Positions 35,212 to 41,880 of a stretch of 64,000 nt of DNA are shown here, piece after piece. Source of the stretch: Diplonema japonicum (taxonomy: Eukaryota; Protista; Euglenozoa: Diplonemea); the NCBI GenBank assembly GCA_964019335.1, contig OZ025663.1, forward strand, positions 434,001 through 498,000, given 5' to 3'. Numbering within the stretch: position 1 is the stretch's first letter; the number at the start of each line of letters is the position of its first letter. Under the pieces are notes generated by a model that was given only the letters and a program-made list of their open reading frames with translations, searched no databases and was not told where the DNA came from. Position numbers and translations under genes: made by a program.

Positions 35212-35399
35212 ATTTTTTTATGTTTGCTCCCCTTAAGAAGCAAACGAAAGAATGAACGAATTTCTCTTTCCTGCGAGATTTTTTTTTTAGACCACATGAG
35301 AAAAACCCTTTCCAAAAAAGAAGAAAAGATGTCAATTGTTTAGCGTTGTGCACCCTATGTTCAGTTTTAGTATTTCTTCATTTTTTTTTTAAAAAAAAA

Positions 35400-35471
35400 G
35401 GGCTCAGCAGGGAATCGAACCCTGGACCTCTCGCACCCAAAGCGAGAATCATGCCACTAGACCACTAAGCC
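35400..35471 (-). tRNA. trnP-UGG: tRNA-Pro (anticodon UGG)
   Basis: GGCTTAGTGGTCTAGTGGCATGATTCTCGCTTTGGGTGCGAGAGGTCCAGGGTTCGATTCCCTGCTGAGCCC. It has a 7-bp acceptor stem, CTCGC/GCGAG anticodon stem and GTTCGATTC B box, and is followed at once by a T9 Pol III terminator. Confidence 0.98.
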
Positions 35472-35486
35472 TTTGTTTTTTTTTTG
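35467..35486 (-). repeat. 20-bp direct repeat copy 1 (putative target-site duplication overlapping tRNA nt 1-5)
   Basis: AAGCCTTTGTTTTTTTTTTG is identical to 40984-41003. Confidence 0.85.
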
Positions 35487-36002
35487 CTAATAAATGAACC
35501 ACTGACGTGCGAAGCAAAGGCTGGGGGGGGGGGACAGAACAGGTGGACCAAGGGTCTCCCTGTATCTAACGAAAGGGGGAAAGGAATGTGATAACCTTGA
35601 AACTTCCGCTAAACTATCCATACGTACCGAGGACGGAGGTGGGGCCGGTTCGTGGGCTCCAGTGTTCGCGACTTCGCCCACCTCCGTGACCCCGGCAGCT
35701 CTCCAGCCCGCTTCCCAAGCCAGCACCCTTCGGGCGAACCTCCGGGTTTTTGAGGAGTGGGGTACCTCGTCCGTGCTCGCCCTCACGAGCGGCACACTGG
35801 CACGGAGGCATCCCCTTCAGCCAGCTTTGTTGGGCGGCGGAGCCTTAGAAAATTCAAAACAAAGGGAAATGATACGGGGGGATGTGTGAAGGGGCGGGGA
35901 AAGGTGAAGACAGAAGTTGGGGTGCACGACAGGGTAATAATGGGAAACACAGGGGGAGGGGGAGAGGGTTCACTAGTACTTTTTGGTTCACTTTTTTCTG
36001 TT

Positions 36003-36004
<2 letters not shown>
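35487..36004 (-). mobile_element. Short retroposon / LINE 3'-UTR fragment E1
   Basis: On the - strand it ends CAGTGGTTCATTTATTAG-C(A)10 directly at the tRNA flank. It shares the 3' signature CAGTGGTT and an internal GGGCGAACC block (+ strand) with E4. 11-bp hairpin at 35633-35687. Confidence 0.6.
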
Positions 36005-36039
<35 letters not shown>

Positions 36040-39000
36040 CTACGTCCTGCGATTGCGGTCAGCGGCTCGGCGGTCGTGAGAGTCTCAGATGAGGTCCATC
36101 CTCTTCAGGTAGGAGGCGGTTTCACTCACCCTCATTGTGAGCATCTCCTTCGTGGTCGTGGGGATGTCATCCCCGAAGATCTCTTCGCGGACCTTGTCTC
36201 CAGCTGGGCACCCGATCAGCAGATGGTGTCTGTCCTGGATCGAATGGCACGAGAGGCAACGTAAGTCATTCTGGACGGGTTTCGACAGGAAACCGCAAGT
36301 CAGGTGGCTCCTGCCCGTTCGCAGTCTCGTTATCTGTACCTCATCGTGTCTGCAGGACAGTTCCTTCAAGGGGAGGTACCTCGCGCCGATCTCCTCTCGG
36401 TACTTCTTGTCCCGACCCGTCTTCTCCCACGAGGCTGCCCAGTCGCGGTTCACCGACCTCTTGATGAGGCTCTTTGTGGTCATCAGGTCCGTCGGTCCGT
36501 CCGGTGTCGACTCCTTTGCGGCGCGTTTGGCGTGTCGGTCGGCTTGCTCGTTACCTGGTAGGCCGCAGTGTCCGGGAACGTACTGGATGATGGTGGAGAG
36601 GCCTTGGCGGTCAAGCGCGTCCAGCCATTTCCAAGCCAGCAGTTCCTCCTTCTGCCTCATCTCTCTGTGGCCCTGCATCAGTCTTCTGATCACCGACTGG
36701 GAGTCCGAGCACAGCAGCACTACTCCGGTCGTCACACCTTGTCTCCGGGTATGGTACAGTGTCAATTGCAGCCCCAGGTTCAGCGCTTTCAGTTCGCATC
36801 GGTAGGCCGAAGTCACTGCTCCTCCGCTCTTGCGAGCCTGCTTCGGTGTGTCAGACCCGATCCTTATCACAGCTGCCGAACCGCCGTTCCTGTGTCCGGT
36901 GACTGACCCGTCGGTGTAGACGATCACATCTGGGATGCCGTGCCTCCTGATCGATTCGAAGGCCGCTCGGAGTTTGAGACTTTTTTCGTCCTTCTTGTGT
37001 ACCTTGCGGACTAGGTCGGGGTGGAACAGGACTTTGGGTTGGACCCATGGAGGGAGCTGCAGGTCTGCGCTCTGAGTGACTGAGTGGTGTGGTAGGTCTT
37101 CGCGTTCCGGCATCCCGTGACTCTTCGCCAAGTCGAGCGCGGTGTTTCGCCAGCTTTTCCCGTACCACATCTGACCCCCGGATATCTTTGTTGCCTTCTC
37201 CGCTGTCGTCCCCGGTTGACGCTGTGCCTTCTCGTAGAGCACCAGGGTGACGTGTTCCAGCAAGGATTCAATCTCCCAGATGCCCGCCTCTGACCTGGTC
37301 ACCGTCGCGGAAGTCTTGTCGAAGCATCCCGTTATCAACCTCGCTGCTGTGTATTGTAGCGAGTCGAACTCGGCCAGAGCAGCATGTCCCACGAAGTTGC
37401 CGTAAGCACCGAGACAGTAGCGCAGAACCGGTTGGACGTACGTCAGGTACAGCGTCCTTAGGGTGTGCTTGCGGCAGCCCCACCTTGTTCCGGCGAGTTT
37501 GCGCAGCAGGCGAAGACGGCTGTTGATCTTTCCCTTCACCTTCTGCACATGCTCGTGGAAGTTCATGCTTTCGTCGAAGGTGACGCCAAGATATTTAGCC
37601 TCGCGTACCACCTTGACTTTCGCCCCACTCGAGGGGAAGCGGGCGTTGATGAGGTTTGCGAGACTGTCGTGCGAGTTCCAGAACTGTCCCTCTACCGGCA
37701 TGAACTCTGTCTTTTCCTGGGACAGTTTCATCGAGAACGTCTCGCACCATCGCTCCGTGAGGCTCACCGCGCGTTGCACCTTCTTGTTCAGCTCGGCAGG
37801 ACTCCCCGCCTCCAGCACTATCGCTATGTCGTCTGCGTACACTACCGCGTCGATTCCAGCCTTCCTGTACAACCTGGCCAGGTCGTTGACGTAGATGGAA
37901 AAGAGCTGCGGGGCCAGGATGGTGCCTTGGGGTACGCCCCCTGTCATTGTCTTCACGCAGCCGTGTTCCCCGTTCACACAGACGGAGGCTTTACGTTGGT
38001 CGAGGAAAGAGGTGATCCATTTCACGAGCTTGGGAGGGTATCCGTCGCCTATCAGCTTTGCGATCACTCCCTTGTGCCAGACTGTGTCGAAGGCTCCTTT
38101 GAAGTCGAACAGCAGGAGACCCCCCAGACCTTGGCTCAGTCTGACACTTTTGAGCTTTGAGGCGGCGTACAGCACGTTTTCCTCCGTGGACCTCCCTTTC
38201 CGGAAACCCGCCTGCGATGTGTGCAATTGCCTTACCCGTCCTGTGTCCTGCAGGAAGCACATCCTGTCCTTGACTATTCGCTCCAACGTCTTCACGATGT
38301 TTGACGTCAGCGCGATCGGCCTGTACGAGGCGGGTTCGGATTGGTCTTTGCCCTTTTTCATGAGGGGGATGATGGAAGACCGCCTCCATTCGGCAGGGAC
38401 GACACCGGTCTGGAGGGATGAGTTGTAGAGGAGGAGTTGAACTTCCCTGGCCACCGGTCCCAGGTACTTCAGCATTTCGTTGTAGATGCCGTCTGGGCCC
38501 GGAGCCTTGCCCTTCTTCAGCCTTCGCAGCACCGAGTCCAGCTCGTCCTTCGTTACCAGGGGGAAGTCGTTGTCTGTCCCGGGCTTCGCGTCCTTCTTGA
38601 TGGTGGTGATCACTTCCTCCGACTTGGCAGTCGTCCTTGGGGAGCAGGCCCTCGCGTAGTGTTCGACGAGTACACTGGCCTTCTCCCTGTCGGTGGTGGC
38701 GATACCGTTTCCTCGTCGGAGCGGGGCTATTGGTGGCTTCTCGCTGCGACCGTCGAATCTGCGGATGACCGAGAAGGCTTGCGTCAGGTTTCCGTCCTTG
38801 GACAACTTCTTGGTGTAGTCGCCCCAGGCAGCCTGCTTCCCGCTCGTTATCGCCCTGTCCAGCTCAGCCTCCATCGCCGCTAGACGTGCCAGGTCTTCGT
38901 CGTTCCCGTCGTGATCCTCGGACAACAGCTTCGCCTTCAGTGTGCTTCGTCGCCTTGCGAGTGCGTCAATCTCGTCGTTCCACCAAACCTTCCCTTTCTT

Positions 39001-39200
39001 CTGTCCTTTCCTGGGGACGCACGATTCGGTTGCCGATAGAAGAAGTGTGCGAAACTCAGCGTTTAGCCTTATCGGGTCTCTGGCCCTGAGCAGCCTGCTG
39101 CACTTTTCTTCCATCGTCTCCCTGTACGCGCTCCTTGCCTCCTTCCCCCAAGAGTAGAGTACTCTTCTGGTCGGTTGGCTGACTCCCCCTCTCAGACTGA
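36005..39200 (-). mobile_element. 5'-truncated non-LTR retrotransposon E2 (RT + RNase H; Ingi/I-group-like) with 45-nt 3' UTR and A35 tail
   Basis: Uninterrupted ORF ending at 36085, poly(A) at 36005-36039. The 5' end abuts the tail of E3, just downstream of where the APE endonuclease would lie. Confidence 0.93.
36085..39195 (-). CDS. LINE pol ORF, 5'-partial: reverse transcriptase, RNase H, C-terminal CCHC knuckle
   Basis: RT motifs KAPGPDGI, YRPIALTS, QAGFRKGRST, DFKGAFDTV, GVPQG, YADD, KYLGV. RNase H motifs YTDGS, ELKAL, SDSQS, VPGHCGLPGNEQAD. Knuckle CLSC-x6-HLLIGC. Confidence 0.95.
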   Translation of the reverse strand: MRGGVSQPTRRVLYSWGKEARSAYRETMEEKCSRLLRARDPIRLNAEFRTLLLSATESCVPRKGQKKGKVWWNDEIDALARRRSTLKAKLLSEDHDGNDEDLARLAAMEAELDRAITSGKQAAWGDYTKKLSKDGNLTQAFSVIRRFDGRSEKPPIAPLRRGNGIATTDREKASVLVEHYARACSPRTTAKSEEVITTIKKDAKPGTDNDFPLVTKDELDSVLRRLKKGKAPGPDGIYNEMLKYLGPVAREVQLLLYNSSLQTGVVPAEWRRSSIIPLMKKGKDQSEPASYRPIALTSNIVKTLERIVKDRMCFLQDTGRVRQLHTSQAGFRKGRSTEENVLYAASKLKSVRLSQGLGGLLLFDFKGAFDTVWHKGVIAKLIGDGYPPKLVKWITSFLDQRKASVCVNGEHGCVKTMTGGVPQGTILAPQLFSIYVNDLARLYRKAGIDAVVYADDIAIVLEAGSPAELNKKVQRAVSLTERWCETFSMKLSQEKTEFMPVEGQFWNSHDSLANLINARFPSSGAKVKVVREAKYLGVTFDESMNFHEHVQKVKGKINSRLRLLRKLAGTRWGCRKHTLRTLYLTYVQPVLRYCLGAYGNFVGHAALAEFDSLQYTAARLITGCFDKTSATVTRSEAGIWEIESLLEHVTLVLYEKAQRQPGTTAEKATKISGGQMWYGKSWRNTALDLAKSHGMPEREDLPHHSVTQSADLQLPPWVQPKVLFHPDLVRKVHKKDEKSLKLRAAFESIRRHGIPDVIVYTDGSVTGHRNGGSAAVIRIGSDTPKQARKSGGAVTSAYRCELKALNLGLQLTLYHTRRQGVTTGVVLLCSDSQSVIRRLMQGHREMRQKEELLAWKWLDALDRQGLSTIIQYVPGHCGLPGNEQADRHAKRAAKESTPDGPTDLMTTKSLIKRSVNRDWAASWEKTGRDKKYREEIGARYLPLKELSCRHDEVQITRLRTGRSHLTCGFLSKPVQNDLRCLSCHSIQDRHHLLIGCPAGDKVREEIFGDDIPTTTKEMLTMRVSETASYLKRMDLI

Positions 39201-39215
39201 AAGAATTTTTTTTTG

Positions 39216-40534
39216 CAATAATAATAATAATTATTCCACTACCAGGCGGGGGGGGATGGGGGGCGGAGAAAGTTGAAACCATAAAAATTGGGAAGGGAAG
39301 GTTAAAACAGTCTCTCTTACTGAGCCATATCGGGGGGGACCTCTTGCTCGTTTGCTCGACCTCTTGTATATTTTCCTGGGCCCCCGACATCCACCTTTCT
39401 TATTTTTTCCCCATTCCCCCGCCACGCAGCTCTTGGGCCTCGAAGGCTTCGGCTGTCACCAAATAAAGACAACCCCAAATATTAAAGGACGGCGATGAGA
39501 TCCCTAATTTTGATTTATCCAGCCACAGGGACCCCACCATCTGCTGGTTTTGTTGGGCTGTGGGAGCCTAAAATATAAATTTGAAAAGGAAATGTAAAAG
39601 GAAAAGTCAAGTTCAGAACTCAACTTCCACAAAGAAGGGAGGAATGCATAACTAGAAAAGGAGCCTGGTAGGGAAAATAAAAAGAAAGGGAAACCAATGG
39701 GGGAGGGGGAAAAAAGAATTACTGGTTACTATTTCTAAAAAAAAAAACCCCCCTTCTCAGCTGCGAAAGATGTTTTTCCAACGAGACTCCCTATCGCGTA
39801 ATGACGCGGGCGCACCAGGTAGGCCGGCGAGTGCTGTGGAGTCAATCGTCAGCGGGGAGGAAGAGGTTGTGAGAGGCGAAGTAGAGGAGGGGGACACGTT
39901 GGCAGATAACCCACCGGCCTTGGGCTTTCCCCGTGTGCGACAGGTCACACAATGGTGTTCCTTACACCCCTATGCGGTTCTGCCTGCCTACCCACCAGAA
40001 GTCGGACCTTCACCGAGAGACTGTGTCACACAATGGACTTACATCCCTTGAGGTGGTCCACCGTACTTGACGCCTCCGCTCCGATTCTCTCTCCGCGGGA
40101 ACCCAGCCTACAACTCTGGTGGCTGGAGGACCCACTTTGAAATCGAACCCCTCACGTGGAAAACACTGTTGCGCACTCTGGACATTTTGCATTAATCTTG
40201 TTTTCTGTCGGCAAACAGTGCTCCCCACGCTCAGGCCACTTCGCTCGGGCGTTCAGGTCAGCTTCCCCAGGAAAACCATCAAACGGCGTCTCCGGATCCG
40301 GTCCTCGTTCTGGCGTGCAGGAGGCTTCCCCAGGGGATGCCATCCAACACGGCGCTCCGGCTCCGGCCCTCGGCCGCCCAACGCAACACCGTTCCCCTGC
40401 TCCTCCTCTCGAGCTGCCTCTCAGCCGCGCAACCTTCACCACCTGCGCGTTGCCCAGGGACCACCACCGTGGGCAGCCACCACACACACCGCGTTCGTCT
40501 ACATGTTCATGTGTGTGTGTAATCGGACCCCTAA
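39216..40534 (-). mobile_element. Degenerate LINE 3' fragment E3 with (ATT)n tail
   Basis: Ends CCCGCCTGGTAGTGGAATA(ATT)n-G-C(A)9. Shares TATTCCACTACCAGGCGGG and TTACTGAGCCAT with E5. Carries a stop-interrupted Cys/His remnant (KCPEC...TVDHLKGC). Confidence 0.65.
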
Positions 40535-40544
40535 TTTTTTTTTG

Positions 40545-40983
40545 CAATAATAACCACTGGGGGAAACTGGGGGGGTGGGGGGTGTGTTCCAGTCTTTTGT
40601 CTGGAGGAACCAAGAGGGCCACCACTTGGGTTGGACCATCCCTCTGGCTCTCCGTTCCCCTTGCGTGGGACAGCCGACTTGGCTGATTACATGTGGGGCG
40701 AACCCCTCGAGATTCAACGCAGAAGACCTCGAGCTGCGCCTGCGCCCTCCCGGCCATCCGTGACCATCTCTTGGGAGGCGTTCTTTGGCCCGTTTTGAGT
40801 GTGTGTGTGTGTGTGTGGGGGGGGAGAGAGAGTTTGGGAAATGGAAAAGGTAAAAGGGAAAAAGGGGGGGGTCTATTTTGGGCTCATGTTCACCCTTGAG
40901 CAGCGTTGGTCGGGGGGAGGATCCTACACTCGGACCATGTTAAGAGCCCGGAGGCCTCGATGAAGGCGCAGACCTCGGCGGAG
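40545..40983 (-). mobile_element. 5'-truncated LINE fragment E4 (last ORF codons + 3' UTR)
   Basis: Begins right after the 20-bp repeat with SAEVCAFIEASGLL..., which resembles a LINE ORF C-terminus (compare SETASYLKRMDLI in E2). Ends CAGTGGTTATTATTG-C(A)9. Confidence 0.65.
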
Positions 40984-41003
40984 AAGCCTTTGTTTTTTTT
41001 TTG
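40984..41003 (-). repeat. 20-bp direct repeat copy 2 (putative target-site duplication)
   Basis: Identical to 35467-35486. On the - strand it reads CAAAAAAAAAACAAA-GGCTT, i.e. the tRNA upstream flank plus tRNA nt 1-5. Confidence 0.85.
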
Positions 41004-41010
41004 AAGGGGT

Positions 41011-41880
41011 AATAATAATAATAAATATTCCACTACCAGGCGGGAGGATCGATAGGAAGTAGAGAAAACAATTCAAGGGAAAGGGATATCACTTCCAACC
41101 AAGAGTAGTGTTCGAAGGTGACTCGTGAAAAGCAATCTCTGTTACTGAGCCATTGGTCGAGGGGTCCTGGTCCGCTGCTCCCTGTAGCACATTACTTGGA
41201 CCCCTCACCACGCTCTTTTCATAATATAATAAAACCGATCTATTTTCACTCCCAGTTACCTTGAAATTATGCCCAGGAGTGAAATAATGTTCGAGCATGA
41301 AATAATGTAACATTGTTTCACCCCTGGGCCTAATTTCACCTAGGTTTAGGGCAAGGTACAAGATCAACGCCATCATCCAACGAAACTTCGGTCTACCGAC
41401 AGTCCGTAATATTCCAGAAATTATTCTGGGCTGTATCTGTCTTGGTGGACTTTTGTTCTTTTTTTTTTTTCTTCCCCCTTCCTCGACCACTTCTTCCCCC
41501 CTGCACCTGTGATCCCCCTGGGCTCCAGAGGGTCGGCCCTTTATCGCCGGCAGGACTCCTGCCGTGGCGCCGTTCACCTTGATGCAGGTGTGGTGGGGGG
41601 GGGGGGGGGGGGGGTGTGCGGTGGAGGAAAGACGCGTCTTCCGTCTTCAGAATGATGACTTTCTCGGTCTGCTCTGAGACCGTTGCTGTGAGAATCGCAG
41701 CCTTCCCTTCCAACCCCTTCGGCAGCGGACCGGTGATCCAGTTGCCCTTCCGCACCAATAGGTGCCACCAGGGGAAGCAACACCTGGGAAGGGGAAAAGT
41801 GAAGGGAAGCATGGAAATTGGGAGGGCAAAGACCAGTTCTTCCGCAAGCAGACAGTTCTCTAGCTTCGCCAGCTGCTAAC
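41011..41880 (-). mobile_element. Degenerate retroposon E5 (same family as E3) with (ATT)n tail; 5' boundary uncertain, possibly composite
   Basis: 3' blocks at 41026-41044 and 41142-41153 match E3 at 39232-39250 and 39317-39328. Confidence 0.6.

Follow-up and report, generated by a model that had tools for sequence, protein, structure and literature searches.

Position-specific integration beside genes transcribed by RNA polymerase III (Pol III) is the standard illustration of how a mobile element can persist in a genome crowded with genes. The retrotransposons described as targeting tRNA genes comprise TRE5, TRE3, NLTR-A and NLTR-B in dictyostelids, as well as Ty3 and its relatives in fungi. 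TRE5-A of Dictyostelium discoideum is a non-long-terminal-repeat (non-LTR) retrotransposon with two open reading frames (ORFs) and an endonuclease of the apurinic/apyrimidinic (APE) type, which inserts by target-primed reverse transcription (TPRT) upstream of tRNA genes whatever their isotype. TRE5-A insertions keep a fixed distance and orientation within a gene-dense host genome; their targeting depends on the B box of the tRNA gene, and the ORF1 protein binds the transcription factor TFIIIB. The integration of Ty3 at tRNA genes of Saccharomyces cerevisiae is also directed by TFIIIB, is precise to the nucleotide at the Pol III start region and keeps the gene intact. Here, we describe a comparable arrangement in the diplonemid Diplonema japonicum, in a 64-kb stretch of contig OZ025663.1 (assembly GCA_964019335.1, positions 434,001 to 498,000 of the forward strand; hereafter the window), where long interspersed nuclear elements (LINEs) and shorter partner elements are piled up against the 5′ flank of a tRNA-Pro gene. 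We consider it highly probable that this stack was built by serial TPRT insertions of tRNA-targeting LINEs, and that it is the local case of a guild of such elements acting throughout the D. japonicum genome.

The Diplonema elements work like TRE5 elements but are not members of that family. TRE5, which lies 40–54 bp upstream of its target and is transcribed in the opposite direction, bears a zinc finger in place of RNase H, ends in an oligo(A) tail and is amoebozoan, whereas the Diplonema elements lie 3–17 nt from the gene, are co-oriented with it, point their 3′ ends towards it, encode RNase H, end in (TTA)n or poly(A), and reside in a discoban host. Ty3 differs from them as an LTR element with an integrase, in place of the APE endonuclease and TPRT found here. 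NLTR-A of Dictyostelium purpureum and NLTR-B of Polysphondylium pallidum are RNase H-bearing non-LTR retrotransposons that likewise target the 5′ flank of tRNA genes; there is no evidence of kinship between them and the Diplonema families, which belong to another supergroup, share a single site, use two registers and form deep stacks. An initial annotation of the window had stated that no RNase H-bearing, tRNA-targeting LINE was known in Euglenozoa. This holds in so far as full-text searches of the literature turned up no tRNA-targeted retrotransposons for diplonemids or any other Euglenozoa, but LINEs of this kind do exist in the two dictyostelids just named. The D. japonicum genome note does not mention transposons.

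The target gene, an intact tRNA-Pro(TGG) on the − strand (35400–35471), was the sole tRNA gene found by ARAGORN in the window, and its 72-nt sequence is the same as that of two other copies in the genome by string comparison. Direct reading of its flank returned the sequence g-c-A10-caaa (35472–35487, − strand) before GGCTT, as first annotated; it consists of a gc(A)n tract (35476–35487), the third such copy in the stack, and a 4-nt spacer, caaa (35472–35475). Directly upstream lies a 3.72-kb copy of a LINE that we call family A (35488–39205, − strand), which the initial annotation had split into two elements, E1 and E2, of a total of five. We compared the stack by BLAST with 20 loci of the same genome (loci from this assembly, 40 taken in total, carry L-numbers below), and the interval from 39205 to 35488 proved contiguous at 99.3–99.8% identity in 13 other loci; E1 and E2 are thus one element. 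This copy is 5′-truncated from a 6.2-kb LINE and retains the reverse transcriptase (RT)–RNase H part of ORF2 (RVT_1 and RNase_H domains, stop at 36085), in agreement with its first classification as a non-LTR retrotransposon with RNase H. An A-run at ~36005–36041 is internal to the element, whose 0.54-kb 3′ untranslated region ends in CAGTGGTTCATTTATTA.

Outward from family A, a gc(A)9 tract (39206–39216, − strand) is followed by E3, a 1.33-kb family B unit (39217–40534, − strand) with a (TTA)n tail and without a long ORF in the ORF list. Units with the identical 5′ end and 97–99% identity were found in L011, L015, L016 and L027, the E3 3′ end has 25 copies genome-wide, and the unit is probably non-autonomous. 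E4, the 3′ end of a family D element (40535–40983, − strand), comprises a 5′-truncated body (40546–40983) and its own gc(A)9 tail (40535–40545), so that both gc(A)9 tracts reported after E3 and E4 are present. Homology to E4 extends 5′ beyond the truncation point of the window copy in L006, L011, L018, L020 and L032, and RT and RNase H lie upstream of its homologue in L011. Next comes a 20-mer, c-A10-caaa-GGCTT (40984–41003, − strand), which is string-identical to 35486–35467 and includes tRNA nucleotides 1–5, again as first described. Seven nucleotides, a-cccctt (41004–41010, − strand), possibly old native flank or untemplated bases, separate the 20-mer from the (TTA)n tail of E5, a 5′-truncated, 230-nt 3′ end of family B′ (41011–41240, − strand; TAGTGGAATATTTATTA... 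tail), with 88–91% identity to copies in seven loci. In total, the stack contains four clear insertion units and at least two to three older fragments. All pieces run head to tail on the − strand in the orientation of tRNA-Pro, confirming the order first proposed, and no further copies of the stack families occur elsewhere in the window.

The gc(A)n tracts, which the initial annotation had read as a native C-A10 target sequence, have a different origin. Family D ends in TTATTGC(A)8–13 at tRNA-Ile, Cys, Leu, Pro, Asn, Val, Tyr, Asp and Thr genes, and in a coordinate comparison the 15-mer tail TTATTGC(A)8+ closed at least 24 of 41 matches to the family D body. Since the same tail recurs at many independent tRNA genes and on most family D bodies, GC(A)n is encoded by family D itself. 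The annotation had named GC(A)9 as the elements' own tail at non-tRNA loci as an observation that would speak against it; an own tail it is, but at tRNA loci instead. Families A and B, by comparison, end at other loci in (TTA)n of variable length with no preceding gc, so both the gc(A)9 that follows E3 and the gc(A)10 that follows the family A copy are target-site duplications (TSDs) of the E4 tail. The tract at 39206–39216 serves as the upstream copy of the 11-nt TSD of the family A insertion and as the downstream copy for E3.

The association of these families with tRNA genes extends over the whole genome. Sixteen of the 20 loci picked by the family A coding region alone contain a tRNA gene according to ARAGORN, an intron-allowing scan adds a tRNA-Tyr in L006, and element 3′ ends lie directly upstream of most of the tRNAs in these loci. 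Metagenome contigs with distant relatives held no tRNA in any of 60 loci scanned in the same way, which is a weak negative given their short flanks; these loci double as a control for false positives of ARAGORN. Genome-wide counts were obtained by pattern searches combining element anchors with a generic IUPAC B-box consensus. The exact 24-nt end of family A has 30 copies in the genome, half of which (15/30) have a same-strand B-box motif 65–95 nt downstream, and in all but one of these 15 the tRNA visibly starts 10–16 nt past the tail. Among 87 exact copies of the B/B′ end, a co-oriented B-box motif was found for 31 and an antisense one for none, while 12 of the 81 copies of the family D tail have a co-oriented B-box motif or tRNA immediately behind them. 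Nearly all of the motifs counted for these three ends visibly belong to tRNA genes. Reversed patterns, used as a control, gave no match for any of the three gapped patterns and eight for the bare D tail, and the estimated chance expectation was ~0.04 and 0.014 matches.

The same picture emerged from the side of the tRNA genes. Of 31 tRNA genes sampled purely on their Rfam score, irrespective of elements, eight were occupied and 23 had no recognised element end directly upstream; every nearby element match (19/19) was co-oriented with the nearest tRNA. Elements lie upstream of at least 16 tRNA isotypes, not of tRNA-Pro alone, and at a set distance and orientation in both the ARAGORN loci and the genome-wide counts, which upholds the targeting of tRNA 5′ flanks proposed from the window. 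Where a family A copy does not directly adjoin a tRNA, it either rests on further elements in a stack with a co-oriented tRNA at its end or extends past the limits of the locus.

Insertion follows two registers, about one helical turn apart. In the first, the (TTA)n-tailed families A and B end 12–17 nt before tRNA position +1 and make 10–11-bp duplications of ~−16 to −5; the second is that of D and C, the families with poly(A) tails, whose ends lie 1–12 nt before +1 (3–6 nt for D, with which the caaa spacer in the window is consistent). A single insertion point at −15/−16, as first suggested, accordingly describes E3 and the family A copy (both at −16) but not E4, which entered at about −5. 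Many B tails lie on GC-rich or mixed flanks at the same distance, 14–17 nt, as on A-rich ones, arguing for positional rather than sequence recognition; a native A-rich tRNA flank as the target signal was rejected for this reason. The TSDs of family A measure 9–11 bp and cover ~−16 to −5, leaving 4–7 nt before the tRNA (for example, aaaaaataaa in L010, aaaattgggcg in L002 and ccacggcgg in L012), which puts the bottom-strand cut at ~−16 and the top-strand cut at ~−5. At three readable, independent junctions of poly(A)-tailed families, 9–10-bp TSDs instead span −5 to +5: caaaGGCTT at tRNA-Pro in the window, gcatcGGTCG at tRNA-Ile in L026 and tcaaTCCGG at tRNA-Glu in L007. The second-strand cut at tRNA +5 that had been proposed for one insertion in the window was thus seen again at two other loci, and because a duplication from −5 to +5 copies these bases, the 5′ end of the tRNA is regenerated. 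Read in this way, at least the last 9–10 nt of the 20-mer (−4/−5 to +5) are the upstream copy of the E4 TSD. The E4 duplication may comprise these 9–10 nt or all 20 nt, and the A10 of the 20-mer may be either the E5 tail or a piece of target that primed on the poly(A) of family D.

Several different families have used this site, as the initial annotation had supposed. The guild includes at least three deeply diverged LINE families with RT and RNase H (A, D and B′), along with the short partners B and C; between A and D, amino-acid identity in the RT is only 29%. A box, YAGTGG(W)(W) (CATTGGT in C), stands directly before the A/T-rich tail in A, B, B′, D, X and C alike. It is a candidate for a common recognition signal that would let the non-coding B and C use LINE proteins.

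Family A homology in other loci runs ~2.5 kb further 5′ than in the window, giving a full element of ~6.2 kb. Full-length copies, which the initial annotation had regarded as the means of typing the endonuclease, were recovered for this family and show it to be of the APE type. They encode an ORF1 of 406 amino acids and an overlapping ORF2 frame of 1441 amino acids with a 2A-like motif (GDIEANPGP), an Exo_endo_phos endonuclease, RVT_1, RNase_H and a C-terminal Cys/His motif (full-length ORF2 scores: 1e-36 for RVT_1, ~2e-12 for Exo_endo_phos / Exo_endo_phos_2). We rejected an endonuclease-less element, since the window copy is merely 5′-truncated and full-length copies carry APE. Ten full-length copies share 99.5–100% pairwise identity, with both ORFs open in eight of the ten, and the family appears to have been active recently. 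The many 5′ truncation points, (TTA)n or A-run tails and locus-specific 9–11-bp duplications of the stack elements are hallmarks of LINEs as well, and by its domains family A is an APE-type non-LTR retrotransposon. The ORF2 frame of family A begins 17 nt ahead of the ORF1 stop in the +1 frame (L001:2181–2600) and has no ATG ahead of GDIEANPGP, which lies ~137 codons in; in related diplonemid transcripts, a Met start stands just ahead of the same 2A motif. ORF2 may therefore be expressed through frameshifting or reinitiation, with the 2A motif then separating the products during translation.

The closest proteins to family A are encoded by transcripts of D. japonicum and D. ambulator, at 33–47% identity, and share with it an N-terminal 2A motif, D(I/V)ExNPGP, before the APE domain. 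Metagenome proteins stand beside these diplonemid transcripts among the best matches, of which the best 120 include no trypanosomatid protein by name. A protein atlas search returned generic RT/APE/RNase H clusters only, and in an Rfam scan of five loci with elements, three of which contain full-length family A, neither a ribozyme nor any further RNA family was detected. The trypanosomatid elements ingi/L1Tc and SLACS/CZAR/CRE come from the same phylum, Euglenozoa. L1Tc combines APE, RT and RNase H with an N-terminal 2A peptide, ingi and L1Tc end in poly(A), and SLACS, CZAR and CRE target spliced-leader genes; to our knowledge, ingi and L1Tc have no tRNA specificity. Family A has the same APE–RT–RNase H order as ingi/L1Tc, and GDIEANPGP as well, but ends in (TTA)n, not poly(A), and 2A motifs occur in further LINE clades too. 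A trinucleotide-repeat 3′ end, like the (TTA)n of A and B, is known from the Drosophila I factor, an RNase H-bearing LINE that ends in (TAA)n instead of poly(A); the repeat unit differs, and we know of no tRNA gene targeting by the I factor.

The further out a piece of the stack lies, the lower its identity to its closest relatives (~99.8, 99.2, 96–98, 90 and 89%), which fits younger inner copies and agrees with the earlier proposal that older copies were pushed outward. The history would then have begun with the insertion of the old C′, H and B′ pieces. E4 would have entered next, at −5, so that its 11–12-nt gc(A)n tail came to fill −16 to −5; E3 would subsequently have cut at −16 and duplicated the E4 tail, and the young family A copy would have cut once more at −16, likewise duplicating the tail. 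The protein domains, tails, truncations and duplications together argue for TPRT by the APE endonuclease. As for target choice, the elements disregard isotype and keep a set distance and orientation, which, together with what is known of TRE5-A and Ty3, points to TFIIIB/TFIIIC: the endonuclease or the ORF1 protein would be placed on the tRNA gene by the Pol III pre-initiation complex. We infer such tethering by analogy with these two systems.

A number of observations weigh against this account. At least half of the family ends do not adjoin a tRNA directly; in the retrieved loci these ends belong to stacks with a tRNA at their end or extend beyond the locus (L004, L012), and two contigs, C52 and C61, hold many family copies. 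The spacers of family C vary from 1 to 12 nt, the family C copy in L001 has a duplication from −14 to −1 instead of −5 to +5, and the E5 tail stands 21 nt from the copied GGCTT, outside the A/B register. The order of events depends on nearest-copy identity, a rough clock. The 5S rRNA genes of D. japonicum are dispersed single copies on many contigs, with ~19 matches above the Rfam cut-off and no single tandem array; the single 5S gene within the retrieved loci has no element end upstream, and the other 5S matches showed no direct abutment with family copies in a coordinate comparison. Finally, the pattern would be no different if the elements recognised conserved DNA within the tRNA gene directly, instead of being steered by the Pol III complex.

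This last alternative, in which the endonuclease or the ORF1 protein binds an intragenic tRNA feature such as the A box (+8 to +19) and cuts at a set distance without Pol III factors, seems to us unlikely, but it deserves serious consideration. The A and B boxes are common to all targets, distance and orientation are fixed, and the single 5S gene that could be read is unoccupied; moreover, element tails precede the tRNA-like head of a short interspersed nuclear element (SINE) in L002 and L040 at tRNA-like distances. It would, however, demand the same DNA specificity in at least three LINE families as divergent in their RT as A and D, and the tRNA-targeting elements whose mechanism has been tested use TFIIIB or TFIIIC.

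It is highly improbable that the elements lack targeting altogether and insert widely with an A/T-rich preference, only the harmless copies beside tRNA genes being retained. APE-type endonucleases often favour T-rich cut sites, and many occupied flanks are indeed A-rich, but this richness derives largely from earlier element tails, and B tails keep their 14–17 nt on GC-rich and mixed flanks. Copies that are 99.5–100% identical are too young for such filtering, a nucleotide-exact distance is not attainable by selection, and the orientation is absolute; retention by selection alone is contradicted by these three features.

We give equally little credence to the stack being an assembly artefact of misjoined repeats. 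It is known from the assembly sequence alone, and repeats of 99.8% identity are hard to assemble. Against this, the assembly was built from 102x PacBio HiFi and Hi-C data with a quality value (QV) of 59.4 (D. japonicum YPF1604, peDipJapo1.1 genome note), the same architecture recurs with locus-specific TSDs at dozens of loci, and matching TSDs at the junctions are not expected from a misjoin. Least credible of all is that the element carried the tRNA along by 3′ transduction, or that element and tRNA were segmentally duplicated as a block, because, although tRNA-Pro(TGG) is identical at three loci occupied by family A, the junction sequences contradict it, in that the spacer between element and tRNA differs per locus even for the same tRNA and the TSDs flank the element alone, upstream of the tRNA, and because at least 16 isotypes are involved while 23 of the 31 sampled tRNA genes have no element end directly upstream.

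If serial insertion of tRNA-targeting LINEs is accepted, the site itself may be seen as a landing pad that renews itself. In this tentative and rather more doubtful extension, unrelated LINEs would read one Pol III complex in two registers, with cuts at ~−16/−5 and at −5/+5, and the (TTA)n or gc(A)n tails, being A/T-rich, would restore a TATA-like stretch, so that the gene is kept working and the target is recreated with each insertion. Such a system would have evolved in diplonemids independently of those in amoebae and fungi.

Three further pieces, all on the − strand, lie outward of E5. The first (41241–41392) belongs to a ~165-nt dispersed repeat with an internal inverted repeat and at least 25 copies at 87–91% identity, in which query positions 416–492 were matched on both strands; the copies are scattered across numerous contigs without an obvious association with tRNA genes, and the repeat is possibly similar to miniature inverted-repeat transposable elements. 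Fragment H (41393–41753) shows 86% identity to at least 13 copies. By-eye comparison with RT matches of 66% identity puts ~3 kb between H copies and the downstream RT of a related LINE family, as at C3:788491, with the RT at C3:791741 and a B′ end at C3:794997. The third piece (41754–41852), a 3′-truncated fragment of a family C variant, C′, has 89.5% identity to eight loci and was compared by eye with family C in L001; it is likely the outer edge of the stack, which possibly reaches ~41880. Between 5256 and 50909 of the window, every long ORF is on the + strand (a kinase, a GPAT-like acyltransferase, an oxoprolinase, a SAM/WW protein and others). With the tRNA and the stack on the − strand, the insertion pile is therefore antisense to the surrounding gene array.

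Other elements were observed in stacks of the same genome. The tRNA-headed element is short and poly(A)-tailed, with the 5′ head GGATCGATCGTGGTCTAGTTGGTTAGCG (L002:7177–7386 and L040 ~960–990, − strand); it is part of stacks, its L002 copy is flanked by the duplication aaaattgggcgtg, and Rfam makes no tRNA call for its head. Another full-length LINE, G, opens with a (GAAAA)n leader, and its ORF1 abounds in Ala/Glu/Lys repeats (L004:7120–10000 and L012:7190 onward); copies of family A adjoin the 5′ end of G directly. Contigs C52 and C61 bring together many B′ ends, H fragments and a related RT family within 100–250 kb, and are maybe transposon-rich islands. Runs of N occur within element stacks beside tRNA genes (L014 ~3370; L035:1360–1422), which leaves some junctions unreadable. 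In a public sequencing run labelled as another organism, 48% of sampled 31-mers of window positions 35300–41299 were present; the run may come from a close relative or a strain with near-identical elements.

For annotation, these findings mean that multi-kilobase blocks before tRNA genes in the D. japonicum genome are nested LINE debris. The system is also useful for studying how a transcription complex steers a LINE that inserts by TPRT: near-identical young copies with open ORFs, cutting in two discrete registers, duplications by which the 5′ end of the tRNA is restored, and dozens of empty and filled tRNA sites are found together in one genome. LINE targeting of Pol III genes has so far been described essentially only in dictyostelid amoebae. 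If our reading is true, an active guild of several families in a diplonemid, a member of Discoba, would represent a convergent solution in a third eukaryotic supergroup.

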